Source: Obrimoposthia wandeli (Eukaryota). From it: 64,000 bases of DNA. The DNA lies in the NCBI GenBank assembly GCA_977020255.1, contig CDROCS010005499.1, positions 1 through 64,000 on the forward strand, in the 5' to 3' direction. A program made the translations under genes and the position numbers. Under the pieces are notes generated by a model, which had not been told where the DNA came from, did no database searches, and saw only the letters and a list, made by a program, of their open reading frames with translations. Within the stretch, counting starts at the first letter, position 1. Each line of letters opens with the position of its first letter. Positions 1-46,867 of this stretch are shown in pieces.

Positions 1-770
1 AAACATGCATTGTCGTATTTGAATATAATTTGTTCAACTCAAAATATCGATGATTAATTCATGCACAACAAATTTTCATAGTGTTATGGCAATGTCAAAT
101 CAAGCATTTTTCGTGCTTGGGTTTGATTAAACGTAGCGAGCTTGAATCACCTTCCTTTAATAGATACAGAACAACTAGTGACGCTCATCTAACTATTTGC
201 ATTCTATCACCACCAAAGAATTGTATAGTGGTTACTCAGAACTGATTGAACAATAATTGTCAGAGGCGATTACAGAGTCGTTTTCATGCTGACAAGCAGC
301 ACAGATAATGGCGATCATGAAGTTCATACGGCACACGCACTCACGTTCCCCGGCAGTGCAACCAGATCTGTTTCAGTTTTCACCCATAATTTCTACAAAA
401 ATTTCTGCAGGAATGCCGCTGAGCGAAATTCATCAAATCAATACGGTTATCATCAGGTTCATTTTGCTACACCTGAAGATAAGTAAGAATGATGAAGGGC
501 ATGTTCCAACACCGATGATTGTCTTTTTACCAACAACCGTATGTAATTTCACCTCTTTACATCTTTAATACCACAATAAGTTGTGACGCAGGCGCCCACC
601 ATTGCCAGTTGCACGTCGTTAACGCGCCTGAAACGCAAATAATCTAAGTTATTGTTTATAAATAGATTTAATATTTTTAGTTACTCTTTAATATGAATTA
701 ATACTTCGTGATGTATCGTAAATAATCACTTTAATTTATGGTTCGCTGCCTAATAATTAGGAGCTGAACC

Positions 771-1451
771 ATGCTTGCATTAAATGTTAACAAATACACA
801 CCACTACTTGCTGTTATTCTTGCAGCAACCTCTTTCAATACGAGTGCGAATTCTGATTATGATTTTATATCTGGCGGGTTCCAGTTATCATCTTTTGATG
901 AATATATTCCTACAGCCTTAGGTGAAAGTTACGACTACACGACTGGGTATTACTTGCGTGGTAGTTGGAATTTTTATAATAATTTCTTTGCTGAAGTTCG
1001 TCATGACTCTACATCTAAAGACAGCTTGTCGATAACACAGACTACTGCTGGATTAGGCTATTTTCATTCTTTCAACGACAATTTTTCATTATATGGGCTT
1101 GTCGGTGTTGATGAAATTGATGTTCAATTCGACGTCAATAAATTTGTACATCAAGCTGATATTAGTATCTCAAGCATGAATGGCTATGTTGGAGCTAAAG
1201 ACAATGCACTTACAGTGGAACTTGGTGCAAAATTCAATGTTCTAGATGCTTGGCAAATTGAACCTGCAATCAGAATAGCTGATTATGACGAAAAAATGTA
1301 TGAATTACGATTAGCAAATACTATTCGTATTACGAAAAATATAGGTCTAGAGGCAAACTTTGCTCACCGAGCATTAGGCGCGAATACATTTGGTCAAAAG
1401 CTTAATATAAGAGAGATGAATTACCAAGTGGGTATACGTTACACATTTTGA
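771..1451 (+). CDS. Outer-membrane beta-barrel protein
   Basis: N-terminal signal peptide (…NTSA-NSD), amphipathic beta-strands, C-terminal BAM-type motif YQVGIRYTF. Confidence 0.8.
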   Translation: MLALNVNKYTPLLAVILAATSFNTSANSDYDFISGGFQLSSFDEYIPTALGESYDYTTGYYLRGSWNFYNNFFAEVRHDSTSKDSLSITQTTAGLGYFHSFNDNFSLYGLVGVDEIDVQFDVNKFVHQADISISSMNGYVGAKDNALTVELGAKFNVLDAWQIEPAIRIADYDEKMYELRLANTIRITKNIGLEANFAHRALGANTFGQKLNIREMNYQVGIRYTF

Positions 1452-1616
1452 TATCGGAAACTGTTGAAAAGGTGATCTTAGTATTGCCTTCTCATTTCGT
1501 TATTCTTAATTCACATGAATTAAATGATTCAAGGCTTCTTATAAACGCTGACTCTGGTAGATTTCTTCTTGGCTCATCCTCTAATTAAATAAACGAGCCG
1601 ATAAGGAAGAAATCAA

Positions 1617-1961
1617 ATGAAAATACAATTATTAAGCCTATCACTACTCTGCTCTTCATCTGTTCTAGCCCAAGATATTACTTTAATTAACCCCTTTGAA
1701 GTACCAACGGTGCATGAAAAGGCAACCATTGAGCATTGGGAGAAAGCCCGTGATTTTCTTGAGACTCAACCTGGGTATGTTTCAACTCAACTGCATAAAT
1801 CATTACAGCCTAATAGTACTTTCTTCTTGATCAATATTGCTAAATGGGAATCTAAAGAAGATTTTCAACGTGCTATTTCAAACATGCAAAAAGTAATTCC
1901 AGCACTAGAACTTGATGGTGTGAAAAATTACCCCGCCTTGTATGAAGTCATTCGTAATTAA
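1617..1961 (+). CDS. Exported antibiotic-biosynthesis-monooxygenase (ABM) family protein
   Basis: Signal peptide (…SSVLA-QD); ABM-like core LINPFEV…QPGYVSTQLHKS…FFLINIAKWES; RBS AAGGAAG. Confidence 0.75.
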   Translation: MKIQLLSLSLLCSSSVLAQDITLINPFEVPTVHEKATIEHWEKARDFLETQPGYVSTQLHKSLQPNSTFFLINIAKWESKEDFQRAISNMQKVIPALELDGVKNYPALYEVIRN

Positions 1962-2005
1962 ACATCTCACGATTGCTGAATCATAATGTTAAAGAAGGAT
2001 ATACG

Positions 2006-2692
2006 ATGAAAGCTAAAACGATAATAAGATTAATTGCTGCCCCTTTATTACTAGTTAACGCTATGTCTGCCAATAGTGCAGCCTACGGTGTGAGTACCGA
2101 GTGGAAAACAGAAGATCCTCAGCAGATATTTGAGACGATGACTGCACAAAAAAGTGCTTTTTCTCAGCTAATAGATGCCGGTATTATTCACGATGTATTT
2201 GTTCGTAAAAGTGTTGTCGGTGATAAAGAGTTCCCTATGATTCGTTTCGTTATTGAAGCTGATAATGAAGAGTCGGTAAAGAATATCATTAGTCAACTTC
2301 CCTTTTCTAAAAAAGGCTTAGTCACAATTGTCGATGCAAAAGATCTTGGGAACAAGTGGCTAAATACAGAATTAGTTCAAGAAAACTATTCGATTGAATT
2401 AGAGTGGACAGATGCACATTCTCCCTATGTTGTTGACCAAATTTTAGGTAAAGATTTACAGCAAGTTGTTGACTGGAATACCAGCGGTAAAGTGACATCT
2501 TCTTATCTGAATATTCAAACAATAGAGGATGAAAATTCTGCCAACAATAAAAAGTTAAGACCTATTTACTCTATTGCGGTATTAGCGAAAGATGAGAAAA
2601 CAGCAAAAGAGATGGCCATGAATCTTGAAGCTGTAAAATCTGGTTTAGCGACTGTAAAGATAATGCACCTAGGCTTCAAAATGAACTTATAA
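2006..2692 (+). CDS. Exported protein with two muconolactone-isomerase-like (dimeric alpha+beta barrel) repeats
   Basis: ATG at 2006 after AAGGA RBS; signal peptide; two similar halves (…FVIEADNEESVKNIISQLPF… and …IAVLAKDEKTAKEMAMNLEA…) resembling the MIase fold. Confidence 0.55.
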   Translation: MKAKTIIRLIAAPLLLVNAMSANSAAYGVSTEWKTEDPQQIFETMTAQKSAFSQLIDAGIIHDVFVRKSVVGDKEFPMIRFVIEADNEESVKNIISQLPFSKKGLVTIVDAKDLGNKWLNTELVQENYSIELEWTDAHSPYVVDQILGKDLQQVVDWNTSGKVTSSYLNIQTIEDENSANNKKLRPIYSIAVLAKDEKTAKEMAMNLEAVKSGLATVKIMHLGFKMNL

Positions 2693-2793
2693 CACTGTAT
2701 TGATTGTTATAATACCAATAAGTTAAAATCACATTGCTTTCAGGTTTGTTCATTCAAACCTGTTTTTTTATACCTGTCGATGAGTTAAAAACA

Positions 2794-3561
2794 ATGTTCA
2801 ATGAACAACCTTTGGCCACATGTTCTACAATCGGTAATTATTATATTGATACTTTGACTCAAACTGTTACTCGTACAACCGATCAACAATCGATTAAATT
2901 ATCAAAGTCTGAAGTGCTTATTGTTTCATTATTAGCTTCTAATCATGGTGTTACAATTTGTAGAGAGCATTTACTTAAGTGTTGTTGGCCAGGGAAAGTC
3001 GTTACACATAGCTCTTTAACTGTTGCGATTAAAAATATACGTAATGCATTTTCGCTAATCGGCGAAAGTAATATTATTGTTACCGAACCCAAAAAAGGCT
3101 ATTCCATTCGTGTGCAAGAAATTGATTCGCCATTACATGCACCTAAGGGTTACTTAGAAAACAATGGTTCTTCTACGCTTGAAACGATATTACCACTGAA
3201 CATTGAACAAACAGCCCACTTTACAGTACATGAAAAAACAAACGTAAAATCAACGACTCTTCTTTTTGTTAAAAACCATTTTGTTTCCGTTGTTTTTTTT
3301 CTACTCACGTTAGTTGTTTTCAGTAAGTATTTTTTGTTTATCGAGCATACCAGCATGAATGGGATAAGTACTTTATACGATGGTGTAGATATTCCAGAAC
3401 GCATATCGTTATCTGTTAATAGTATTCCCAACGATATGTCCGAATTGATTGTGTATCCACTTGGTGGTCTTTGCTCATCTTTTCAAATTATCGGTTTCAA
3501 TGATGTAAGTATTGTCGATTTTACAGCAAAGATAGAACAAGGTGATTGCAACAATGAGTAA
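2794..3561 (+). CDS. ToxR/CadC-like membrane-anchored winged-helix transcriptional regulator
   Basis: Trans_reg_C-type wHTH (LSKSEVLIVSLL…CWPGKVVTHSSLTVAIKNIR…TEPKKGY), one TM helix, about 70-aa periplasmic tail with two Cys, one near the C-terminus. Confidence 0.85.
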   Translation: MFNEQPLATCSTIGNYYIDTLTQTVTRTTDQQSIKLSKSEVLIVSLLASNHGVTICREHLLKCCWPGKVVTHSSLTVAIKNIRNAFSLIGESNIIVTEPKKGYSIRVQEIDSPLHAPKGYLENNGSSTLETILPLNIEQTAHFTVHEKTNVKSTTLLFVKNHFVSVVFFLLTLVVFSKYFLFIEHTSMNGISTLYDGVDIPERISLSVNSIPNDMSELIVYPLGGLCSSFQIIGFNDVSIVDFTAKIEQGDCNNE

Positions 3562-4000
3562 ATTAGTTGGAAAAATAATAACGGGAGTTGTACTTGCCCT
3601 ATTGTTCATTGTTTTGTTCGGTTCAGCATCAGCCTTATTAACGAAGACTTCATACCGTTTTTCTAGTCAATATGATGACTATGGAAAAGAAACGCTTAAG
3701 ATTACTTATAATCGCGGGCGTATGAAAATGCAATTTATCGGTAAAGACACGAAAGACGCTATCGTTATATCGAAGCAGTTTTTTGGTTTTTTCCTGCGTT
3801 TTGGTTCACATTACTATTTATATGCAACGGAACAAGACGGTGCAGAGAAACATCAAAGTTTTACTGTCCGTAGTTACTATATAAAGAATGTAAATAAGAA
3901 CGATGCTTTTTTGATTTCAGATCAGAGAGGCGTTTTTGTCGCTAAAAATGGAACGTTAATTCATCTGAATAGTGTTCTTATTGGTACAAGTGGCTCATAA
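3554..4000 (+). CDS. ToxS/VtrC-like periplasmic partner (single N-terminal TM, beta-rich)
   Basis: ATG at 3554 overlaps the regulator stop by 8 nt; N-terminal hydrophobic anchor followed by short beta-strand-like segments. Confidence 0.6.
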   Translation: MSKLVGKIITGVVLALLFIVLFGSASALLTKTSYRFSSQYDDYGKETLKITYNRGRMKMQFIGKDTKDAIVISKQFFGFFLRFGSHYYLYATEQDGAEKHQSFTVRSYYIKNVNKNDAFLISDQRGVFVAKNGTLIHLNSVLIGTSGS

Positions 4001-4007
4001 ATTAATT

Positions 4008-4020
4008 GTTACAGCGTCAC
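4008..4020. promoter_or_regulatory. matS-like site (1 mismatch)
   Basis: GTTACAGCGTCAC versus consensus GTGACRNYGTCAC. Confidence 0.5.
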
Positions 4021-4171
4021 TATTGTAACAAACTTCTTCTTTGTTATGTATCGGTAAATTTATGGTTATTCATAACGGAGGTTTTTAATGATGTAACAGT
4101 ATAAAGTTATAGTGCATTAGGCTTTGTGTTTTTATACATTAACGGCAAACTTTTATTGGCGATCATTCAGC

Positions 4172-4184
4172 GTGACAGCGTCAC
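4172..4184. promoter_or_regulatory. matS site
   Basis: GTGACAGCGTCAC, perfect match to GTGACRNYGTCAC. Confidence 0.8.
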
Positions 4185-4226
4185 TATCGTGCCGGCTCTA
4201 TTTAATTGAATCTGTTAATACAGCAA

Positions 4227-4949
4227 TTAAGCTTTAAATGACAACCGAGAGCCATCAAAAATTAGCTGCGCTAATAACTGTTTAGTTATATCTTGTCCGT
4301 TGTTATCGAATAAAACACCACAGTTATTTGAACCACCCATTTTTTGCGCACTGCGTACGACTCCGGTAAGGTGGTAATTCTGCCCTGTTACGGGGTGTTT
4401 CACAATAATGGTTATTTGATTATCGATATCAAATGAAGGGCCATTCGCACCGTAAAAGAAACAGCACCCTTTTGATGATAAATCTTTAAATTCCACCAGC
4501 AAAAGGCGATTGGAGACTGAGACGTGACCTTGTAACTTCACTTCATAACGCGCCTCGCTACGAAGCTGTGTTAACCCCATCATTTGTGGAATTCTGAGCG
4601 TGATCATTCGCTCGGGTTTTTGGATAATATTATCTATTTGAGTTTTGAAGCGGACTATCGCCCCTTCGCCGCGATCGGAAATTGCCTTAATCGATACCCA
4701 GTACCCCTCACAAAAATAATCATCTAAATCATGTGGGCTGACTTCAGGTAAAGCCAAAATAAAATAATCGGTACCATTAGATCCAATGAATGTCGTTTCG
4801 CATTGAAACAAGCGTCCTAGCGGGGTTTTAATACTGATCGTAATACTACTACCATGGTTAATCATACATATACCGCGTATACCAGGCACTGATTCTTCAC
4901 TACGTTTAGATAAAAGCCGCTCTCTTAGCGCATTTCCATTTACATTCAA
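4227..4949 (-). CDS. PilZ-domain c-di-GMP receptor (YcgR/flagellar-brake-like)
   Basis: RxxxR (LRSEARY) and DxSxxG (DLSSKG) motifs after an N-terminal domain. Confidence 0.85.
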   Translation of the reverse strand: MNVNGNALRERLLSKRSEESVPGIRGICMINHGSSITISIKTPLGRLFQCETTFIGSNGTDYFILALPEVSPHDLDDYFCEGYWVSIKAISDRGEGAIVRFKTQIDNIIQKPERMITLRIPQMMGLTQLRSEARYEVKLQGHVSVSNRLLLVEFKDLSSKGCCFFYGANGPSFDIDNQITIIVKHPVTGQNYHLTGVVRSAQKMGGSNNCGVLFDNNGQDITKQLLAQLIFDGSRLSFKA

Positions 4950-10202: not shown

Positions 10203-12279
10203 TTATTTTCTTCTTCTGAAACCAAACAGACCTAGCAGTGTCAAAGCAAACATGCCAAACGAAGCACCAGAACGTTCTATCGTTCCAGATGCTTCTGGAC
10301 GTGCTTGAATAGTACCATCTACAATTGGCACAAGTTTAACGGCAACGAGGCGCTCATCACCGCTACATTGCGATTCACTCGTTAGGTTGTCATAACCACC
10401 AGCACACTGTAGAGCTGTAGCAGAAATAACACCCGCATCATTAATCCCGGTTGCTTGTGCAATACGGAATTGATTATTATTAGCGACTATCGGATTTGAT
10501 TCATCTCCATATGTAAGGTCGTTGATCATCCAAGACCCACCAGCAGTCAACGGAGAGTTGGCAATCGCCGCACCGTCATTGAACAAGAATGCGCGTTGGC
10601 GACGTTCACGTCCATCAACTTGGTTAACGGTTTCAGAGTCTACCCAACCAACGACTACATCATGGTTGTTAATTGCTGCTGTATAACCATTGCTGCCGTC
10701 AAAGAAAATATTAGCATTCACACTTGAATCTAACATTTTTAATGAATCATTCTGGTTGTGTTCAGCATAAGAACGATTTTCAGCGCGATAGTTTTTCGCA
10801 ATACCAATAACTTTGTTGTTGTCATTGATACCTGTACCAGTCGAATAGCTGTACTGGCGATCACCATCGTTATTCTCTACTTCAGTTCCAGGAATAAACT
10901 TCATAGTCCAATTATCATCACAATACTGAACCATCTTCAAAAATTGCAGCTCTAGGCGCATAATAATCATCATCTCGGTATTTTGTGAGAATCCAACAGC
11001 AATGGTAAATTGGCTTTGCATCCACACCCACGCCCACAACAGCAACCGCTTTAGCCGATGCTTGGAATGAACGATCTCGGTTATCAGGATCAAGTACTAA
11101 TTCATCAGGCGTTGTTATAATACCTGGTGTAGGTTGACCAGAGCTATCAACCGTCCAGAAAGCCGCTTGATTGGCAAAGGTACTAAACTGACATTCAAAT
11201 TTTGAATACACATTACTTGCCGATTCATCGACTACACAGCTCTGAAAATTCGCGTTATTTAAGCTAAGACTAAGATTATCATCACCTTTAATATCATTGA
11301 TATTAGGTAACTTATCTTCATCATATTCCCAAGTAGGATTCGTTGATGTGCCTCTATTATAATAAAAGCTAGGCGCATAAGAGGCAGAGCCAACCACTAA
11401 TAACTGGCTGTTATATATAACAGCATCATTTGCCAGCGTTTGACCCATTTGTGTAGCTAACTTATCCTCATTAACACCAGAGCGAACCACTGGAGGTGTT
11501 AATTCGGTTTTAATTGCACCTGCATTAACAAAACCACGCTTATCAAACGCGCGCGCATTTCTAACACCATTTGAGAAGTAAGCTGAGCTCGTAATACCGT
11601 AAACGTAATCAGTGCCTGCATCTGCAACAGTACCATTAACAACAGAGTTAGTTGTTACAACCTTATCACCATCATCAATAATCGTACCTAAGGCCGCTTT
11701 ATCAGCATCACTATACCCATCAGCGGAATTAGCAAATGTTCTAATTAACTGACCTTCAACAATGGCTGACGCATTTGAGTAATAACCAAGAGACCAAGCA
11801 GCCTGTTCGCGTTGAAGTCCACCTAAGCCTGTACGATCCTTAGGATTGTCTCGGTTATAAGCAAGACCATAGTACTGCTCTTCAGACCACACATTGCAAG
11901 TGTTGAACCCGAGATTATCATTACAATAACGTTCGAATTCGTTGCGATCATTAAGGTGTTGATAATTGTCCGTTAAAAAAGCAATGGTATCTCTGTAATT
12001 GATACCATCTGTACCTCTACGGCTTTCCCCTACAACCTTGTATTCATCTGCATCGCCACAGTCCCTGGTAAAACAGTTTTGTGCTGTTGAAGAGGCTTCA
12101 ATTCCTTGCCCATAAAACTCAACAGAATTATTGCTCATATTTGCAGTCGAAAAATAATCCAGTGATTTAACACCACTTATATCTGTAACCTCAACCACTT
12201 TATACACAGCAGCGTTGGCACCAGTAGCACCGGCGATAAGTATCGCCAGTGTAGAAAGCTTTAACATCTTATGTTGCAT
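10203..12279 (-). pseudogene. DUF3466-family secreted protein with GlyGly-CTERM-like anchor, frameshifted near 10920-11010
   Basis: ORF halves 10918-12315 and 10203-11093; signal peptide from ATG 12279 (TAATG overlap with uup); C-terminus SGASFGMFALTLLGLFGFRRRK; homolog-like text alternates between frames. Confidence 0.8.
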
Positions 12280-14207
12280 TAGGATTCCTTTTGCATTGCC
12301 TCTAATTCTTCCCAACGCTCAAATGCTACTTCAAACTCTTGCTCTAATTCTGCAAGGCGAGCTAATGTCGCTTCAGTATCATTTTTTACGTCTTGGAAGA
12401 ATGCAGGATCATTAACTTGTTCCTGCAGTTGTGCAATTTCATTTTCCAATTTTTCAATGATAAGCGGTAGACCTTCTAGCTCTTTTTGAAACTTATAAGA
12501 AAGCTTCTTTTTTGGCGTAGAACGAGTAGCCTCTCGCGGCTTATTATTTTCTTGTTTTTTCTTTGCCAGCTCAAATTCAGCAGCCTGATTTTTCGCAATA
12601 TTTGTTAGAGAGTTAGCACGCTGCTCTTGAGCATCATGATAACCGCCTACGTATTCGTCGATAACCCCATTGCCTTCAAAAATCCAGCTTGTCATCACAG
12701 TATTATCAACAAATTGACGATCGTGGCTTACTAAAAGTAAAGTACCCTGATAGTTGGCAAGTATTTCTTCTAAAAGTTCCAATGTTTCGATATCTAGATC
12801 GTTTGTTGGTTCATCGAGAATCAATAAGTTATTTGGTTTTAAGAACAATTTAGCCAGTAATAGACGGTTTTTCTCACCACCAGAAAGTGCTTTAACGGGT
12901 GTACGTGCACGACGAGGGTGGAATAAGAAATCTTGTAAATAGCCTAACGCGTGACGAGTCACACCATTAACGGTCACTTCTTGCTTACCATCAGCAAGGT
13001 TCTCCATTACGGTTTTTTCAGGGTCTAATATTTCACGGTATTGGTCGAAGTATGCTGCATCAATCTTAGTACCACAGTGGAACTTACCCGATGTAGGTGT
13101 AAGTTTCTCTAGCATTACTTTTAGTAATGTACTCTTACCACAACCATTTGGTCCGATAAGTGCAATACGGTCGCCACGCATAACAGTGAAGCTGAAGTCT
13201 TTGATGAGTGGTGTGTCACCATAGCTGTATGAGATATTCTCAGCTTCAAATACAATCTTACCAGAGCGGTTCGCTTCTTGAAGTTTCATGTCGGCTTTAC
13301 CAACCACTTCACGGCGTTCACTGCGCTCATTACGTAATGCTTTTAGTGCACGAACACGCCCTTCGTTACGGGTACGTCGAGCCTTAACGCCTTGACGAAT
13401 CCATACTTCTTCTTGTGCTAGCTTTTTATCAAACTCTGCGTTTTGTTCCGCTTCTACTCGTAGCATCTCTTCTTTACTTTCAAGATACAGTTCATAGTCA
13501 CCAGGGAAAGAAACAAGTTTACCGCGGTCTAAATCAAGAATACGTGTCGCCATCGAGCGAATGAAAGCACGGTCGTGAGAGATAAAGATAATTGAACCAC
13601 GGAAGTTCTTAAGGAAACCTTCAAGCCATTCGATAGTTGCAACATCTAAGTGGTTAGTTGGCTCATCAAGAAGTAAGATATCAGGGTTACATACCAATGC
13701 ACGAGCCAGCGCCGCTTTACGTTGCCAACCACCCGATAAATCGCTAAGCATTGTGTGCGGATCAAGATGTAGGCTTTCCAACACAGCAGCAATTTGACTA
13801 TCAAACTGCCACGCATTCGCATGGTCAATTTTTTCTTGTGCTTTCATTAATTTGTTAAGATTAGATTCACTAGGATCAACGCCGATTAAATCTAATAAGT
13901 GGTGATACTCTTTAAGTACCTTACCCACTTCAGCCAAACCTTCAGCAACATAATCAAACACGTTGCCTTCAGCGTTACGCGGTGGATCTTGTTCAAGGCG
14001 AGAAATTGTAAGCTCTGTCTGACGCTGAATGCTGCCATCATCAAGCAATACATCGCCTGTAATCACTTTCATGAACGTTGATTTACCTGCGCCATTACGG
14101 CCCACCAAACAAACACGTTCATTAGGCTGAAGAACGAACTCTGCCTTATCAAGTAAAGCGTGATCACCATACGCAAGTTGCGCGTTACTAATATTAATTA
14201 AAGCCAT
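12279..14207 (-). CDS. uup: ABC-F family ATPase Uup
   Basis: Two ABC cassettes (GRNGAGKST, GPNGCGKST), LSGGW/LSGGE, DEPTN, C-terminal coiled coil. Confidence 0.95.
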   Translation of the reverse strand: MALINISNAQLAYGDHALLDKAEFVLQPNERVCLVGRNGAGKSTFMKVITGDVLLDDGSIQRQTELTISRLEQDPPRNAEGNVFDYVAEGLAEVGKVLKEYHHLLDLIGVDPSESNLNKLMKAQEKIDHANAWQFDSQIAAVLESLHLDPHTMLSDLSGGWQRKAALARALVCNPDILLLDEPTNHLDVATIEWLEGFLKNFRGSIIFISHDRAFIRSMATRILDLDRGKLVSFPGDYELYLESKEEMLRVEAEQNAEFDKKLAQEEVWIRQGVKARRTRNEGRVRALKALRNERSERREVVGKADMKLQEANRSGKIVFEAENISYSYGDTPLIKDFSFTVMRGDRIALIGPNGCGKSTLLKVMLEKLTPTSGKFHCGTKIDAAYFDQYREILDPEKTVMENLADGKQEVTVNGVTRHALGYLQDFLFHPRRARTPVKALSGGEKNRLLLAKLFLKPNNLLILDEPTNDLDIETLELLEEILANYQGTLLLVSHDRQFVDNTVMTSWIFEGNGVIDEYVGGYHDAQEQRANSLTNIAKNQAAEFELAKKKQENNKPREATRSTPKKKLSYKFQKELEGLPLIIEKLENEIAQLQEQVNDPAFFQDVKNDTEATLARLAELEQEFEVAFERWEELEAMQKES

Positions 14208-19825: not shown

Positions 19826-22800
19826 TCACGTATTGGGACGACAGTTTAGGTTTAGCAGCATTAATTCTCGTAACGCGACAGAGAACTTCGCAAATTCATG
19901 GGCTGTTCCCACTTTAAATTCTGCTAGTACACTGTTCCAGCGATGAATTGCAGCTTTGTGCGTCTCCATCCATCTCTCTATACTTTCTTCCGCAGTCTCA
20001 CCATTTTGATTACTGGTAATAACGGCAGAAGTTAGCTGGCGTTGTTGCCAATCGAGATCTTCTCTAAATGAAGCGCGTGCTAAGGCTTGCCAATGGTTTT
20101 CTACTGGCTGATTGTGTACTTGTTGTAAGAACCAATGCAAAGACAATTTAGAGCCAACAACAAAGTAAACGCGCGAGATATGATCAATATCTTTATCTAG
20201 CTCTTTCGCTATCTGAGCAATATCCATTGCAGAATACAGGCTGGTTAAACGAGCAATATTGTGTGCCAGTTCAGCAGGTACGCCCTGCTCAATCATCACA
20301 TTAGCTTGATCGTCATGCTCTTCAACCTCACCTGTTACAAGGTAACTTTCAAGGTTTTCTTGTAACGTATTCAAGATAGGTTGATACAATGCAATCTGTT
20401 GTTCTATTGCGAGTTTGCGTTCGCGATTACGTAATATCCAGCGAGTGGCGCGGCGTAACATACGGCGACAGCGATAAAGCATCTCGTACTGCACTTCTGC
20501 TGCTACTTTATTGTCTAATTCACGAATTTGACTAAAGAACGTATCAAATCGGAAGACTTCACGCCCGACAGAATAAGCAGATGAAATTTCAACAACTGTT
20601 GCACCCGTTTCTTCTTGTAAACGTGTGACAAAATTGCAGCCCATTTCGTTAGACATTTGATTTGCGAGCGATGTTGCAATCAGTTCTTTTCTTAGTGGGT
20701 GTTGTTCCATCTGGGCGCGGTATTTTTCTTTCAGTTGCTTAGGAAAATACGCAGGTAGCAAACGGGCATGGTAAGGGTCATTTGCAATCTCATCGCTAAC
20801 AAGATCTTCTTTCAGCACCATTTTTCCGTAAGCGACTAGTACCGCAAGTTCAGGGCGAGTTAGACCCATGCCTGATTTTTCACGCTCTGCTAACGTCTCG
20901 TCGTCAGGTAAATACTCTAATGCACGATCCAATTTACCTACACGCTCTAGGTGATGAATAAAACGAATTTGTTCTTTCAGCAGCTGTACATGTTGTTGTT
21001 GCGTTACCGAAATAGATTCACTCTGGCAATACGCATCATCCAATACAATCTCTCCTACTTCGTCTTCCATGCTTTCAAGCACTTCATTACGCTGTTTGTA
21101 AGTAAGATCACCACCAGCAACAAGGCTATTGAGCAATATTTTAATGTTTACTTCATTATCTGAGCAATCTACGCCACCCACATTATCAACGAAATCGGTG
21201 TTAACTAAGCCACCCGTTTTAGCGAATTCAACACGGCCAAGCTGAGTCATACCCAGATTACCGCCTTCACCAATCACTTTCGCACGTAGCTCACCGCCAT
21301 TGATACGTAAACCATCATTCGCACGATCGCCCACATCAGTATGTGTTTCTGTGCTTGCTTTCACATAGGTGCCAATACCCCCGTTCCACAGAAGATCCAC
21401 TTCCATGCGCAAGATAAGACCAATCAGCTCATTAGGCGGTACGCTTTGCTTACGTGTACCTAAGAGTTTTTGGATCGGCGGGGTCAGTTTGATCGACTTA
21501 CTACGACGAGAGAAGATCGCGCCACCTTCAGAGATCAAACTTTTATCGTAATCTTCCCAGCTTGAACGCGGAAGATTAAATAGACGATCACGCTCTTCCC
21601 ACGTTTTCGCAGCATCCGGATTAGGATCCAAGAAGATATGCATGTGGTTAAAGGCAGCCACTAAGCGCGTGTGTTTTGATAACAACATACCGTTACCAAA
21701 CACATCACCCGCCATATCACCGATACCCACACACGTGAAATCGGTAGATTGGCAATCAATACCTAGTTCACGGAAATGACGCTTAACCGATTCCCAGCCA
21801 CCTTTCGCCGTAATACCCATTTGTTTATGATCGTAACCGTTAGAACCACCTGATGCGAATGCATCACCTAGCCAGAAGTTATAATCATCAGATACTGAGT
21901 TAGCTAAATCAGAGAACGTTGCGGTACCTTTATCGGCAGCAACAACCAAATACGGGTCATCTTCATCATGACGTACAACATTGACTGGCGGCATTAGTTC
22001 GCCATCAACAATGTTATCTGTCACATCCAGCAAGGCACGTATGAAGCGTTTATAACAACGTTGTCCTTCATTCCAAATTTCTTCACGTGTTGTCATCTGT
22101 GGTTGACGCTTACAGATGAAACCGCCCTTCGCGCCTACAGGTACAATAACGGTGTTTTTAACTTGTTGTGCTTTTACCAGACCAAGAATTTCAGTACGGA
22201 AATCTTCCTGACGATCTGACCAGCGTAAACCACCACGAGCGACTTTACCGCCACGTAGGTGAACACCTTCTATATCAGGTGCGTAGACAAAAATTTCAAA
22301 GAAAGGAACGGGTGCTGGAATCTCGGGGATTTCAGAAGGACGAAGCTTCAGGGATAGCCAAGGCTTTGCATTGCCATTTTCGTCTGTTTGGTAATAGTTA
22401 GTACGTTGCGTTGCAAGGATCATATCCATGTAACGACGAATGATCCTGTCATCATCAAGGCTTTCTACACGATCCAATTTATCATGCAGCTTCTTAATCA
22501 GATCTTGCTTAGCTTTTGGTGAGTATTTTTTCTTTGGTTCAAAACGCAGCGTAAACAGCTTCACTAAATCACGAGCAAGATCACTATGGCTCGATAATGT
22601 TTCTTCAATGTAGTGTTGGCTAAATGGGAAACCCACTTGACGCATGTAACGTGCGTAACTACGAATCACGGTAATTTCGCGACCCGTTAAGCCTGCGCAA
22701 AGTACCAGACGGTTGAAACCATCACTTTCTAAGTTACCGTGCCAAATTGACGAGAATGCATCTTGGAAACGATCGCGCGCTTCACTTAAATCGATTCCTG

Positions 22801-24655
22801 TACATGCGTTATGCAGCATAGAGAAATCAAGAATCCAATACACTGTGCCATTGGCTTTAACGACTTGGTAAGGTGATTCACCAATTACACGCAAGCCAAG
22901 GTTTTCCAGCATTGGCATAACGTCAGACAAGTGAATGGGCTCGTCACGGTGGAAAAGCTTCAACTTAACAAAGTGTGAATCGTTCGCTTCTTCTTGAGGG
23001 CGATAAAACAACATGCCTAGCTTGTTGTCTTCACTTAGGCTTTCTAGCTGTTCGATATCAGCCACGGCAGAACCTGGCAGCATTTCTTCTTTGTATGAAC
23101 GTGGGAAAGCACGTGAATAGCTCTTACCAAGTGGAATACCTTTACTTTCACCGAAATTAGCAATTAACGAGTTGCTTAAACGATCTTCCCAAGAAGCCGC
23201 AGCCTCAACAAGGTTGTGTTCAATGGCTTTCGCATCGATATTGAAATTATTATTTTTAACTCGCACGATATAATGGGTTCTCGCTAATGAACTTTCAGAG
23301 AAGAACGTTGTAAATTCAACAGTCTGCTCAGAGCCAAAGTAGTCTTTAAGAATTTCCTGTGTTTTACTGCGAAGTTCGGTGTTATAGCGCTCTTTTGTTA
23401 CGTAAACCATACACGAGAAGAAACGACCGAATGGGTCACGTCGTACGAATAATCGTAGCAAATCACGATCTTGCATTTGAACAACACCACAACCCACATC
23501 TAGCATTTCTTTTTCATTTGCTTGAATGAGTTCATCGCGAGGATAGGTTTCGAGTAAATTATTTAACGCCTTCCACGAATGTGAACCTTCGGTATAGCCG
23601 CTCGCCTCAAGAATACGTGAAACGCGATCTCGAATCAGTGGAATATTCAGTGCACTCTGGTGGTAAGCCGTTGACGCGTAAAGCCCCACAAAGCGATGTT
23701 CACCAATAACATTGCCTTTATCATCAAAGCGTTTAATTCCAATATAATCAACATAAGCAGGACGGTGGATTTTTGATTTACCGTTGCTTTTGGTTAGAAT
23801 CAAAATGTCGTGCTTACGGGCTTCGATACGGGCTGATTCTGGTAAATCAGATAATAGTAAGCAATGCTCTTTATCTGTCTTATTTAATAGCCCTAAACCA
23901 CTTTCATCACTTGGACAAAGCTTGTAATCCCCTTCTATAGGGTTTAAATCATATTGGTGATAACCCATGAACATGAAGTTATGGCGGGTTAACCAATTAA
24001 TAAATTCGACAGCTTCTTCACGATGAACATTGTTTACTGGTAAATCTGCAGTTTTAAGATCCTGAGCAATGCCTTGCATCTTATCTTGCATTGCCTGCCA
24101 ATCGTTCACAACCAGATCAATATCGCTTAGCACTTGTTTTAATTCTTTTTTGAGTGCTTGCATTTCTTCTTTGCTGGTTAGGCGATCCACTTCAATATGG
24201 AAAAGTGTTTGGTAATCTCCCTGCTTACCGCATGCTTCTACAATATTGCCGTCTTCATCACGCTTGAAGAAGTACGGACCATTGAGCATAAGGTGGCTAG
24301 TAATATCTAGACGGTTCAATGTCATTCGCACTGAATCAACAAGGAACGGACAATCAGGCGTGACAATTTCAACCACAGTATGTGTTGACTGCCATCCGTA
24401 TCGACTAAGTGTTGGGTTATATACTCGAACAGAGCTTTGTTCAGGTTTGTTTTGCATCAAATGGTGCCATAAGCTAAGTACAGCACCATATAAATCAGAT
24501 TCATTCCGTTGAAGCAGATCATCATCTGCCAGTTGCCCTAACAATCGTTGAGCAAAAACATCCACTAATGACTGCTGAGGGGCTTCTATCTTATTCTGGA
24601 TTAAGCCATATACCTTCTCAAGCAGTACCGGCACTATCGGATCGGGTGCGGTCAT
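19826..24655 (-). CDS. gdhB: Large NAD-specific glutamate dehydrogenase (GDH2 family)
   Basis: 1609 aa; GGKVARGGLRWSDR, VPVGAKGGF, DDPYLVVAADKGTATFSD, GIGDMAGDVFGNG. Confidence 0.95.
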   Translation of the reverse strand: MTAPDPIVPVLLEKVYGLIQNKIEAPQQSLVDVFAQRLLGQLADDDLLQRNESDLYGAVLSLWHHLMQNKPEQSSVRVYNPTLSRYGWQSTHTVVEIVTPDCPFLVDSVRMTLNRLDITSHLMLNGPYFFKRDEDGNIVEACGKQGDYQTLFHIEVDRLTSKEEMQALKKELKQVLSDIDLVVNDWQAMQDKMQGIAQDLKTADLPVNNVHREEAVEFINWLTRHNFMFMGYHQYDLNPIEGDYKLCPSDESGLGLLNKTDKEHCLLLSDLPESARIEARKHDILILTKSNGKSKIHRPAYVDYIGIKRFDDKGNVIGEHRFVGLYASTAYHQSALNIPLIRDRVSRILEASGYTEGSHSWKALNNLLETYPRDELIQANEKEMLDVGCGVVQMQDRDLLRLFVRRDPFGRFFSCMVYVTKERYNTELRSKTQEILKDYFGSEQTVEFTTFFSESSLARTHYIVRVKNNNFNIDAKAIEHNLVEAAASWEDRLSNSLIANFGESKGIPLGKSYSRAFPRSYKEEMLPGSAVADIEQLESLSEDNKLGMLFYRPQEEANDSHFVKLKLFHRDEPIHLSDVMPMLENLGLRVIGESPYQVVKANGTVYWILDFSMLHNACTGIDLSEARDRFQDAFSSIWHGNLESDGFNRLVLCAGLTGREITVIRSYARYMRQVGFPFSQHYIEETLSSHSDLARDLVKLFTLRFEPKKKYSPKAKQDLIKKLHDKLDRVESLDDDRIIRRYMDMILATQRTNYYQTDENGNAKPWLSLKLRPSEIPEIPAPVPFFEIFVYAPDIEGVHLRGGKVARGGLRWSDRQEDFRTEILGLVKAQQVKNTVIVPVGAKGGFICKRQPQMTTREEIWNEGQRCYKRFIRALLDVTDNIVDGELMPPVNVVRHDEDDPYLVVAADKGTATFSDLANSVSDDYNFWLGDAFASGGSNGYDHKQMGITAKGGWESVKRHFRELGIDCQSTDFTCVGIGDMAGDVFGNGMLLSKHTRLVAAFNHMHIFLDPNPDAAKTWEERDRLFNLPRSSWEDYDKSLISEGGAIFSRRSKSIKLTPPIQKLLGTRKQSVPPNELIGLILRMEVDLLWNGGIGTYVKASTETHTDVGDRANDGLRINGGELRAKVIGEGGNLGMTQLGRVEFAKTGGLVNTDFVDNVGGVDCSDNEVNIKILLNSLVAGGDLTYKQRNEVLESMEDEVGEIVLDDAYCQSESISVTQQQHVQLLKEQIRFIHHLERVGKLDRALEYLPDDETLAEREKSGMGLTRPELAVLVAYGKMVLKEDLVSDEIANDPYHARLLPAYFPKQLKEKYRAQMEQHPLRKELIATSLANQMSNEMGCNFVTRLQEETGATVVEISSAYSVGREVFRFDTFFSQIRELDNKVAAEVQYEMLYRCRRMLRRATRWILRNRERKLAIEQQIALYQPILNTLQENLESYLVTGEVEEHDDQANVMIEQGVPAELAHNIARLTSLYSAMDIAQIAKELDKDIDHISRVYFVVGSKLSLHWFLQQVHNQPVENHWQALARASFREDLDWQQRQLTSAVITSNQNGETAEESIERWMETHKAAIHRWNSVLAEFKVGTAHEFAKFSVALRELMLLNLNCRPNT

Positions 24656-41391: not shown

Positions 41392-41517
41392 TGCCATCTA
41401 GATACGCCTCAGGCCATCAACCAATCTAGAAGGCAACAAACGGGAAGTAATGTGCAGCTAATCTACATTCTCATTAGTTAAACTGGCAAATTGTAATGTG
41501 TGAGCTAACATTATTAG

Positions 41518-41608
41518 TAATCGATAATTATATATTAACCAGTTAGCGCAAGGCTCTCACGAGCCATTCCCCTAAGCCCGAGACAGGAGTCGTTTCGGGC
41601 TATTTTTT
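41518..41608 (+). ncRNA. Candidate SdsR/RyeB-like Hfq-type sRNA
   Basis: TTAGCGCAAGGCTCTCACGAGCCATTCCCCT…CCGAGACAGGAGTCGTTTCGG plus U-tract resembles the E. coli SdsR 3' part as recalled; syntenic downstream of rsmF; sigmaS-like -10 CTAACAT at 41505-41511. The 5' end is estimated. Confidence 0.7.
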
Positions 41609-41985
41609 GTCTTTTTTTCACCCTACTCATTGTTATCAACATCAGCAGTCGATCAGGTAAAGCCCTCACATTCTTAATTATCGTTTTTACACCTTTCATG
41701 AATATCCCCTTCAATTTTGTTGCAAAACGATCTGCATCGCGTTAATGGATACGGCTTAGTATTTTTTGACCAAACTTGTATTATTAAGCGTTAATCTTCA
41801 ATATTTTTCATTTCACCATCACGAAATAATGCATTAAGCAACTGATTATCAATCACATTATTAATCCCAGCTTGATGTTCTATTTTTTTGAACAAGACAC
41901 ACGAATTTTTCCACTATCTTCTGCTGCCCCTCCCTTTTATAGTTAACCCCATAGCAAACGGCTAATACCGAATAAGGAATACAAC

Positions 41986-46135: not shown

Positions 46136-46561
46136 TTGTAGATACACTCTATATAACAGTTTATAAAATAGGGCTTTTTAGCCCTTTTTTGATTATTTAT
46201 CTTAAATTATTAACAATTCACACCCAACGCATCATTTTTATCACATTTCTGGTCTAACCTCATAAATTTATACGATATTTATAATGACTAACTGTTATTT
46301 TTGTCACATTTCTGATGATAAGTTATTTAAACCATTTGTAACCCCTTGCCCCTATTCTTAGCCTATGGCTTAATGGAGTTCGGCTTGTAATGCAGAAATA
46401 TTTATGCCGCAAATTGAAATAGAAAACTTCGTTCCGCTACTTAGTAATAAGTGTTGTTGTCCTGAAGAGCTTCAAACTTCTTTTGTCCATAAGTAATACA
46501 TTATGTTGGCTTAAGTGCGCAATAATGCGTAATAACACAATACAATTTCAGGAGACATAAA

Positions 46562-46771
46562 ATGTCTAAAACAACAGGTATCGTAAAGTGGTTTAACGAC
46601 GAGAAAGGTTTCGGTTTTATCACTCAAGATAACGGCGGAGCTGACGTATTCGTTCACTTCCGTGCAATCGCTGGTGACGGATTCAAATCTCTTGCTGAAG
46701 GTCAGAAAGTATCTTTTGACGTTGAGCAAGGCCAGAAAGGTCCTCAAGCTGCAAACGTTGAAATCGCATAA
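46562..46771 (+). CDS. Cold-shock protein, CspA family, copy 2
   Basis: [17 protein letters not shown]; terminator at about 46796-46823. Confidence 0.97.
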
Positions 46772-46867
46772 TTCGCTAATTCATTAGTGATCTTAAAAGG
46801 GTATCGTTAGATACCCTTTTTGTTTAATAGCAATCAGCATTTAGTGATATACCGCACGAAGAATCAC

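Follow-up and report, generated by a model that had tools for sequence, protein, structure and literature searches.

The cassette at 771-4000 lies in a window of 64 kb (the whole stretch of 64,000 nt that we analyzed, with no N among its bases), and its carrier is a marine Photobacterium. An ORF check recovered five co-oriented genes at the coordinates claimed, all intact and with good ribosome-binding sites. The genes had also been described as AT-rich, and this holds, as the region 560-4220 has a GC fraction of 0.349 vs. 0.399 in the remainder and ranks lowest of 302 windows of 3.66 kb, i.e. it is the most AT-rich segment of that size in the window. The genes, the two operator-like boxes and a stem-loop are listed in Table 1. 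None of the five proteins matched the PADLOC defence models and all NCBIfam matches were far below threshold. An exact-sequence look-up gave no match for the regulator and two metagenome contigs for the ABM protein. Literature searches for the five-gene cassette found no description, which does not prove that none exists.

Table 1. Features of the cassette and its promoters (window coordinates).
Feature	Position	Strand	Basis
Operator-like box, barrel promoter	684..701	-	Conserved box match; 686-701 reads TTAATTCATATTAAAG
Small outer-membrane beta-barrel protein, 226 aa, predicted signal peptide	771..1451	+	PF13505
Operator-like palindrome TTAATTCACATGAATTAA	1506..1523	.	Conserved promoter block, 94 nt upstream of the ABM ATG
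Exported ABM-domain protein, 114 aa, predicted signal peptide (...SSVLA/QD)	1617..1961	+	PF03992, PDB 2RIL
Exported 228-aa protein, tandem ferredoxin-like halves, no Pfam family	2006..2692	+	AF2, Foldseek, hhalign
Stem-loop, 8-bp stem, 6-nt loop, then U7	2741..2769	+	Between 228-aa gene and regulator
ToxR-type membrane regulator, 255 aa	2794..3561	+	PF00486, PDB sequence matches, alignment A2
ToxS/VtrC-like partner, 148 aa	3554..4000	+	AF2 model, Foldseek

The regulator and its membrane-anchored partner

The sequence-only reading saw a wHTH regulator with a membrane segment and two cysteines in a periplasmic tail, overlapping by 8 nt with a partner gene in a ToxRS/VtrAC-type pair, and on these points our results agree with it. 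The regulator matches PF00486 (Trans_reg_C) with 41 bits (cutoff 26.2) and can be divided into a wHTH domain (residues ~12-108), a membrane helix (~158-183) and a periplasmic tail of 72 residues. When the wHTH was compared with PDB sequences, the DNA-binding domains of Vibrio cholerae ToxR were the best matches (E 4e-9 to 6.5e-9), followed by CadC. Among the intact orthologues, each regulator has one hydrophobic 19-mer, as judged by hydropathy only, followed by a tail of 71-94 residues that holds exactly two cysteines, spaced by 25 residues in 19 proteins, 26 in two and 30 in one. Here these are C227 and C252, which are invariant in alignment A2. The regulator is the least conserved of the five cassette genes. 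Judged on sequence, the protein is a ToxR-type winged-helix regulator with a single predicted membrane-helix anchor.

The codon for C252 (3547-3549) lies 5 nt ahead of the partner ATG (3554-3556), which is placed inside the end of the regulator gene (...TGC AAC AAT GAG TAA). Through this 8-nt overlap translation of the partner is predicted to be coupled to that of the regulator. Among orthologues whose ORF start is clear, the spacing of the two genes ranges from about -11 to +5 nt; a single locus (L011) has +21 nt. The two genes are adjacent in all of the 24 species that carry them.

The AF2 model of the partner is confident (pLDDT 92.1, pTM 0.82) and shows an N-terminal membrane helix (residues 2-28) and a beta-barrel. 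In a Foldseek search of 350,542 PDB chains the first three ranks were taken by ToxS (8alo_B, 8u2f_A and 8u2f_B) and the next two by VtrC (5kev_B and 8dml_B); lipocalins followed after the top five, and a further VtrC chain (5kew_D) was found at rank 14. The top five matches have probabilities of 0.99-1.0, but with E-values of 3e-3 to 2e-2, none of which reaches 1e-3, they are weak, and the TM-scores are 0.40-0.53. As modelled, the partner is a membrane-anchored barrel of the ToxS/VtrC lipocalin-like fold. None of the 18 family members compared with Pfam gave a family above cutoff or a ToxS-family match, a search of PDB sequences with the partner profile returned nothing at E up to 10, and neither ToxS, VtrC nor PsaF showed significant similarity in sequence. 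A sub-threshold match to PF17550 (PsaF; E 0.025, 14.5 bits, cutoff 25) covers partner residues 37-147 over profile positions 31-151 and was seen in two of the 18 members. A whole-library profile search with the partner gave only 13 representatives; the family is truly small and not an offshoot that has diverged from some annotated family.

Exported proteins encoded upstream

The three upstream products all carry signal peptides as judged by eye, with a positive N-terminus, a hydrophobic core and cleavage sites of the A-x-A/S type, and these features recur in the orthologues. The first of them matches PF13505 (OMP_b-brl) with 34.8 bits (cutoff 28.7) and ends in ...RYTF; no relative was found among PDB sequences. 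We consider this barrel more likely to be a co-regulated target than an importer.

The ABM protein matches PF03992 with 28.3 bits (cutoff 23.1), is 48% identical to the copy in the V. splendidus cassette and aligns over 95 residues of the mature protein with PDB 2RIL (E 1.5e-26). The latter was deposited as 'Antibiotic biosynthesis monooxygenase', a depositor's name that gives no specific function; unlike the cassette protein it is a 99-residue chain that lacks a signal peptide and is not known from any cassette. The wider ABM subfamily includes forms without a signal peptide. A heme-related role was considered for the ABM protein and set aside, as the heme-degrading HmuQ equivalog scored 20.8 bits vs. 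a cutoff of 130.

The 228-aa protein had been read as double MIase-like, which stands at the level of the fold only. Its AF2 model (pLDDT 78, with residues 1-22 below 50) consists of two b-a-b-b-a-b halves, and these align with each other end to end (hhalign E 0.0034). Foldseek returned tandem ACT/ferredoxin-like and HemQ/Cld/DyP proteins with low TM-scores, so that the tandem ferredoxin-like topology was recovered, but no isomerase was found among the 50 matches listed and no MIase family was matched in Pfam by the whole protein or its halves. No other Pfam family scored above cutoff either, and a weak YCII match was the sole sequence hint. Comparison of the halves with the ABM family by hhalign showed no relation. 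The HemQ/Cld/DyP matches (TM 0.24-0.32, rmsd ~17 A) reflect a generic tandem ferredoxin-like topology, and a heme role was set aside for this protein as well. Homologues of the 228-aa protein were found only in Vibrio and Photobacterium, the same narrow range as for the partner.

Linkage of the genes and a conserved promoter box

The partner family was found in 24 species, all of them Vibrio or Photobacterium; the loci were gathered with an alignment narrower than the full 18-sequence partner set. They sort into five groups by the context of their flanking genes. The ABM and 228-aa genes had been claimed to be linked to the regulator pair, and this is borne out, as both lie upstream of it in 19 of the 24 species and in several genome contexts. 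At protein identities of 38-52% the genes still have the same order and orientation in different genera and contexts. In three species (L015, L017 and L018) none of the upstream genes accompanies the pair, P. minamisatsumaniensis has the pair but not the ABM, 228-aa or barrel gene, and truncated or interrupted copies are seen in eight loci (L015, L018, L020, L023, L024, L025, L029 and L033). The linkage is thus strong but not obligate, since the pair stands alone in three species and one gene is broken in several others.

The outer-membrane barrel had been counted as part of the same module. A barrel gene is indeed present here, but among the 24 species only four have one beside the pair, and the barrel is therefore accessory and outside the conserved core. 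Orthologues adjoining the pair were seen only in P. indicum, P. profundum, P. frigidiphilum, Vibrio sp. Of7-15 and a metagenome locus (L004). The complete set of five genes was seen in three Photobacterium species and, with only 47-64% identity, in Vibrio sp. Of7-15.

Alignment of 12 promoter regions showed a single conserved block, a box of the form TTAAT-N5-TKAAW. Within the window it occurs only ahead of the ABM and barrel genes, ~70-94 nt from their start codons. The end of the barrel box lies 70 nt from the ATG, and the box shares bases with a -35-like hexamer in a promoter-like site at 698-726; a box 69-70 nt upstream of the barrel gene is also present in two further loci (L004 and L016). 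The ABM box overlaps the -35 position that belongs to a TATAAA -10-like hexamer at 1540-1545, and its palindrome is the sole match to that sequence in the 64 kb when up to 3 mismatches are allowed. A degenerate 16-mer gave three matches in the window, confined to the two promoters, vs. 0.23 expected, and none of 100 shuffles reached three. In most of the ABM-carrying Vibrio loci the 16-mer is invariant, with at most one mismatch in the others, and its distance is ~70 nt in loci where the ORF begins at the annotated start. The variant of the box follows the regulator clade, and in V. mediterranei and V. barjaei an additional, almost identical box precedes an unrelated gene of 838 aa. With its half-site periodicity the box resembles the published ToxR box, TNAAA-N5-TNAAA (PMC4829181, PMC8517210).

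The sequence-only reading proposed that the module regulates itself. The sequence gave no support for this: it is the barrel and ABM genes that have the box in front of them, whereas the regulator gene has a terminator-like hairpin before it. The further proposal, that a small molecule is imported, modified or bound, is conjectural. A stable hairpin, differing in sequence, is found at the same place in all sampled loci, and the stem-loop at 2741-2769 is probably an intrinsic terminator that divides the ABM-228 unit from the regulator.

A proposed sensory cassette and its alternatives

The co-component sensors ToxRS, VtrAC, TcpPH and PsaEF are central virulence switches, and as these pairs mostly stand at the head of large cascades, it is difficult to determine what they bind and which genes they control directly. 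Taken together, our results make it probable that the locus represents a new sensor family of the ToxR/ToxS-VtrA/VtrC class, carried on an AT-rich, horizontally mobile Vibrionaceae cassette and activating adjacent genes for exported proteins. The regulator tail and the partner barrel would form a periplasmic heterodimer whose stimulus is either a small hydrophobic molecule or a state of the envelope that affects the cysteine pair, and perception would stabilize or activate the regulator. Its wHTH could then bind the boxes overlapping the -35 regions and switch on the barrel gene and the ABM-228 operon, probably by counteracting silencing of the AT-rich DNA; that the regulator activates rather than represses we infer from the position of the box alone. 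The barrel, ABM and 228-aa products, exported to the periplasm and outer membrane, may bind or chemically process the inducer, and the regulator pair would be a separate transcription unit downstream of the terminator-like hairpin.

Hallmarks of the co-component class are a lipocalin-like partner, a C-terminal cysteine near the gene overlap and a mobile cassette (Kinch et al. 2022, PMC9214523), and the cassette family is absent from the families listed there. One close comparison is ToxR/ToxS of V. cholerae and V. parahaemolyticus (PDB 8ALO and 8U2F; DNA-binding domain 7NMB and 8B4B). The regulator resembles ToxR in its cytoplasmic wHTH, its single membrane helix and its small domain in the periplasm, which has two cysteines, one of them near the C-terminus, and as with ToxS the downstream partner is N-terminally anchored and has the same barrel fold (Foldseek ranks 1-3). 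The target boxes are likewise AT-rich, with half-sites repeated at 10 bp, and just as ToxR targets ompU and ompT, the cassette probably has a gene for an outer-membrane protein among its targets. Nevertheless, the cassette is not an orthologue of ToxR/ToxS: the partner and ToxS are not detectably similar in sequence, the regulator tail is shorter (72 aa) with its cysteines 25 residues apart, the box is TTAAT-N5-TKAAW instead of TNAAA-N5-TNAAA, and, unlike the core toxRS gene pair, the cassette is accessory, AT-rich and present in a few Vibrionaceae.

VtrA/VtrC, the bile-salt receptor of V. parahaemolyticus (PDB 5KEV, 5KEW and 8DML), also combines a membrane-bound wHTH regulator with an overlapping gene for a lipocalin-like barrel on a mobile cassette. 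[quoted passage not shown] However, VtrA has no disulfide whereas the cassette regulator has the tail cysteine pair, and VtrA/VtrC belong to an enteric pathogen, where they control a regulator of type III secretion, whereas the neighbors here are two exported alpha+beta-barrel proteins and a small outer-membrane barrel, in marine or deep-sea bacteria. With PsaE/PsaF of Yersinia a regulator that ends in a cysteine close to the gene overlap is a shared trait, and PsaF is the only sequence-level hint for the partner, which echoes the borderline VtrC-PsaF link of PMC9214523; the score is below the cutoff and the match limited to the two members, and the target of PsaEF, a fimbrial adhesin operon, is unlike the cassette neighbors.

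The step from the local pair to the box can be questioned, as the box is AT-rich and similar to the ToxR box and could be bound by another factor, such as housekeeping ToxR or a nucleoid protein, with the pair controlling other genes or having a modulating role only. The P. minamisatsumaniensis locus, where the pair stands without the three upstream genes, and the additional box before the 838-aa gene in V. mediterranei and V. barjaei both fit such a factor. On the other hand, the box accompanies the cassette in five different genome contexts, always beside the pair, it precedes two unrelated types of gene and its variant changes with the regulator clade, and we consider control by another factor unlikely. 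Equally improbable in our view is that the ABM and 228-aa proteins are inputs, which would capture or convert the signal in the periplasm and pass it to the ToxS-like barrel in a four-protein sensor. Co-inheritance of the four genes, the range that the 228-aa family shares with the partner and the small folds of ligand-binding type speak for it; yet the ABM-228 unit has its own promoter with an operator-like box and a hairpin before the pair, the layout of a regulated target, and the pair survives without these two genes in three species. That the genes are mere neighbors on a decaying, silent, horizontally acquired islet, without functional coupling, would agree with the AT-richness of the segment and the eight damaged loci, but is very improbable given the order and orientation kept at such low protein identity across genera and contexts, the intact ORFs of the window with their good ribosome-binding sites and the conserved cis box.

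Within the favored reading of a sensor that activates adjacent genes, a more specific but rather unlikely version is that the unit is self-contained: the ToxS-like barrel and the regulator tail would sense a compound, hydrophobic or aromatic, that derives from a host, alga or competitor, and would induce an exported cofactor-free ABM oxygenase and the 228-aa protein, which modify the same compound chemically in the periplasm. A dedicated outer-membrane barrel would, in this same speculative scheme, have been added to the sense-and-respond unit in some lineages. If true, a co-component sensor would here for the first time be linked to small-molecule chemistry in the periplasm and not to virulence regulators, adhesins or porins.

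The cassette family offers a tractable model, as it is compact, with a single regulator and partner beside one or two promoters. Every promoter has a sharply conserved box whose position is fixed, and the cargo is small, namely two exported proteins to which an outer-membrane protein may be added. Sensor, box and target genes can now be tested together. The class also reaches beyond enteric pathogens to marine and deep-sea Vibrionaceae, including oyster-associated vibrios of the Splendidus clade, and the 228-aa tandem ferredoxin-like protein represents an unannotated exported family whose distribution follows that of the sensor.

The regulator-partner pair

The five + strand open reading frames of the sequence-only reading were all recovered at their positions (see table), as was the 8-nt overlap of regulator and partner, where the partner ATG lies inside the regulator's final codons TGC AAC AAT GAG TAA. 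The cassette is also AT-rich as described, with a GC content of 34.9% in 560-4220 vs 39.9% in the remaining window, and this segment is the AT-richest of 302 windows of 3.66 kb. Signal peptides were assigned to the barrel, ABM and 228-aa proteins by inspection and by their recurrence among orthologues.

Features of the cassette and of the remaining window (N count 0)
Feature	Position	Strand	Remark
Barrel	771-1451	+	above cutoff for Pfam OMP_b-brl
ABM protein	1617-1961	+	above cutoff for PF03992
228-aa protein	2006-2692	+	no family match above cutoff
Regulator	2794-3561	+	above cutoff for Trans_reg_C
Partner	3554-4000	+	no family match above cutoff
AT-rich block (T)TTAATATTAA	667-681		barrel promoter
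Box variant TTAATTCATATTAAAG	686-701	-	70 nt upstream of barrel ATG
-10-like hexamer AATAAT	721-726
Palindrome TTAATTCA-NN-TGAATTAA	1506-1523		94 nt upstream of ABM ATG; sole match in 64 kb at <=3 mismatches
-10-like hexamer TATAAA	1540-1545		by reading
Extended -10-like TGTTATAAT	2705-2713		by reading; upstream of the hairpin
Terminator-like hairpin	2741-2769		8-bp stem, 6-nt loop, U7; between 228-aa gene and regulator
Largest ORF	19826-24655	-	1609 aa
SdsR/RyeB with antisense SraC/RyeA sRNA pair, and cspA thermoregulator leader	41480-41612 and 46379-46824		Rfam

When the regulator was profiled together with three orthologues, the best solved-structure matches were the V. cholerae ToxR DNA-binding domains (E 4e-9), with CadC next. 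All regulators contain a single strongly hydrophobic segment, and the tail is 71-94 residues long in intact copies. Exactly two cysteines were found in every intact tail, spaced by 25 residues in most orthologues, with the last one 2-18 residues from the C-terminus. Of the five genes, the regulator varies most among the close Photobacterium relatives (87-90% identity vs 92-97% for the others).

The partner family is small, with four clusters found among 5.8 billion proteins by a word-based search and 13 members among 1.84 billion representatives by a full HMMER profile search. No significant sequence link to ToxS, VtrC or PsaF was detected (PsaF gave a sub-cutoff match, E 0.025, in two of the 18 family members), and the partner profile had no matches among PDB sequences. 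The AlphaFold2 model, built from an 18-sequence alignment (pLDDT 92.1, pTM 0.82), shows about nine strands after a helix spanning residues 2-28. Compared by Foldseek with 350,542 PDB chains, the ranking opens with V. cholerae ToxS (8alo_B), followed by V. parahaemolyticus ToxS (8u2f_A, 8u2f_B) and then VtrC (5kev_B and 8dml_B, with 5kew_D at rank 14), and true lipocalins (crustacyanin, an engineered lipocalin) come behind. The top five have probabilities of 0.99-1.0, but E-values of only 3e-3 to 2e-2 and TM-scores of 0.40-0.53; the modelled likeness to ToxS/VtrC is specific in its ranking and modest in its scores, partly because the membrane helix is missing from the crystal constructs.

Kinch et al. 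defined the co-component class by a CadC/ToxR-like wHTH, a rapidly evolving periplasmic domain, a lipocalin-like partner and a Cys close to the C-terminus where the two genes overlap, in a survey that covers enteric pathogens and mentions neither Photobacterium nor V. splendidus (PMC9214523). The pair described here shows these hallmarks. Taken together, the architecture, the partner fold with its modest scores and the conserved Cys pair bear out the main identification of the sequence-only reading, a ToxRS-like co-component pair, which adds a new, unannotated family to a known class.

Gene linkage and genome contexts

The first 10 kb of the window share 89-94% DNA identity with Photobacterium indicum, P. 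profundum, P. frigidiphilum and one metagenome contig, and all these relatives have in common the downstream PilZ/YcgR-like gene, PCC-domain gene, DUF3634, MatP, Lon-like gene and FabA. From this identity and these neighbours we assign the window to a Photobacterium of the P. indicum/P. profundum/P. frigidiphilum clade. DNA homology among the close relatives starts only at about window position 119-165. A second small OMP_b-brl gene, encoding 187 aa, is found in the closest metagenome relative (L001:978-1541). It precedes the cassette barrel gene by about 1.3 kb, at a position beyond the window's left end, and no box was seen in front of it.

With one genome scanned per species, the partner turned up in 24 species of Vibrio and Photobacterium and in no other genus, and ORFs at each locus (L-numbers) were compared with the five window proteins. 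Regulator and partner are adjacent in 24/24 species (broken in L015, L018 and L033). ABM is present in 20 of the 24 (degraded in L023 and L025) and so is the 228-aa gene (split in L020, interrupted in L024); both occur together in 19, always directly upstream and in the same orientation. The barrel is found in 4/24 (P. indicum, P. profundum, P. frigidiphilum and Vibrio sp. Of7-15) and in metagenome locus L004, and three species have the pair alone (L015, L017, L018). The regulator-partner pair thus forms the conserved core, with ABM-228 as a tightly associated two-gene module and the barrel as an accessory. All five genes are present in Of7-15 at only 47-64% identity to the window, and L004 has barrel and pair without ABM or the 228-aa gene at the same PilZ/PCC site. 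Matches to the 228-aa family were confined to the partner's taxa.

Grouping the loci by common flanking genes gave five genome contexts. The Splendidus clade has HSP70-like/GGDEF and TerB/PhoD as neighbours of the cassette, V. mediterranei has a DEAD helicase together with a MacAB-type efflux operon, and P. minamisatsumaniensis has a LysR gene and RHS, with an integrase about 7.5 kb away. Mobile-element traces were seen beside the cassette in the latter (phage-type integrase and RHS-repeat gene, L003:551-1726 and 10544-13165), and HTH_23/HTH_28 transposase-like fragments lie left of it in P. indicum (L007:1-534). The cassette is decaying in several species (L015:6633-7336, L018:483-1041, L033:6172-6810, L020, L023, L024:2265-4534, L025, L029): regulator and partner are truncated in P. 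sagamiensis, V. atlanticus has a truncated regulator and P. sanctipauli a split one, and the 228-aa gene has an interruption of about 2.2 kb in L024 and is absent from L029.

The exported ABM and 228-aa proteins

The ABM protein matches PDB 2RIL (E 1.5e-26), whose depositor's name gives no specific function, and more distantly anthrone-type and SnoaB oxygenases. Its subfamily is broader than the cassette, including Shewanella, Flavobacteriaceae and Deltaproteobacteria, with and without signal peptide. In Shewanella psychropiezotolerans (L036:3721-5348) a signal-peptide homologue (55% identity) directly follows a cytochrome c' gene, with a divergent cytochrome b561-type (Ni_hydr_CYTB) gene upstream of the latter; the ToxR-like pair is absent from this locus, which may represent a separate periplasmic role for the subfamily.

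The 228-aa protein is modelled (pLDDT 78) as two b-a-b-b-a-b units, and its two halves can be aligned with each other over their full length (hhalign E 0.0034, 19% identity); neither is related to the ABM family. The MIase assignment was not borne out, as no MIase match was obtained; Foldseek gave tandem ferredoxin-like proteins (tandem ACT, HemQ/Cld/DyP; TM 0.24-0.38), a likeness of the model in topology only. Many polar residues, among them H62, D63, E84, D86, E131, D144, D150, Q152, D156, R185 and Y188, are invariant in 15 orthologues, which suggests a specific site.

The shared box and the hairpin

Reading of the upstream regions revealed the palindrome. Its degenerate form TTAATTMAYRTKAAWT matches only at the barrel and ABM promoters within 64 kb (3 matches, the palindrome counted on both strands, vs 0.23 expected; >=3 in 0/100 shuffles). 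L004 has the perfect palindrome 70 nt upstream of its barrel gene, and Of7-15 near-perfect copies 69 nt (barrel) and 73 nt (ABM) upstream. TTAATTAATATTAAAT occurs in every ABM-carrying Vibrio locus, mostly as an exact copy and otherwise with a single mismatch, 70-71 nt upstream of ABM where the ORF start is the annotated start. In a 12-sequence promoter alignment the box is the only conserved block besides the ribosome-binding site. It can be read as TTAAT-N5-TKAAW, which shares its 10-bp half-site periodicity with the published ToxR box TNAAA-N5-TNAAA (PMC4829181, PMC8517210).

Both window boxes overlap the -35 position of the -10-like hexamers. Since this is the usual site for an activator of the regulator's family, the position suggests an activator site. 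The box variant tracks the regulator clade (Photobacterium type vs Vibrio type), which fits the local regulator as binder; shared descent would give the same pattern, and binding by another factor is a main rival. Building on the established architecture, partner fold (modest scores), Cys pair, linkage, box and hairpin, we propose that a regulator-partner heterodimer would sense in the periplasm, the wHTH would bind the boxes, the barrel gene and ABM-228 would be activated, and the exported products would act on the inducing compound. The other main rival makes the exported proteins inputs rather than outputs. The family stands out by its unusual cargo and by a predicted operator that can be read directly from the sequence.

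A further box that is nearly identical, TTAATTAATATTAATT, was seen in V. mediterranei and V. barjaei (L011:1797-1812, L032:1217-1232). The L011 copy precedes by about 270 nt a gene for an 838-aa protein with no Pfam domain (2085-4601), a few kb upstream of the cassette; this gene may be another regulon member. In most Vibrio ABM promoters the (T)TTAATATTAA block reappears, some 25-30 nt ahead of the main box (alignment A6), and it may be a second binding site.

A stable hairpin is found at the same place in every sampled locus, with differing sequences (z -2.2 to -5.4), and the ABM-228 unit thus probably ends before the regulator. Self-regulation, as earlier proposed, found no sequence support, and a degenerate-form scan gave no box upstream of the regulator in the window. 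The import role suggested by the sequence-only reading likewise gained no support. The extended -10-like sequence is poorly kept in P. frigidiphilum; if active, the regulator leader would include the terminator-like hairpin. In several Vibrio loci (L019:5995-6030, L026, L027, L022) the hairpin arms AAGGTGAG / CTCACCTT resemble Shine-Dalgarno and anti-Shine-Dalgarno sequences, and the regulator's likely ATG lies at the base of the 3' arm (ccttATGaa), so that this stem-loop might also limit regulator translation.
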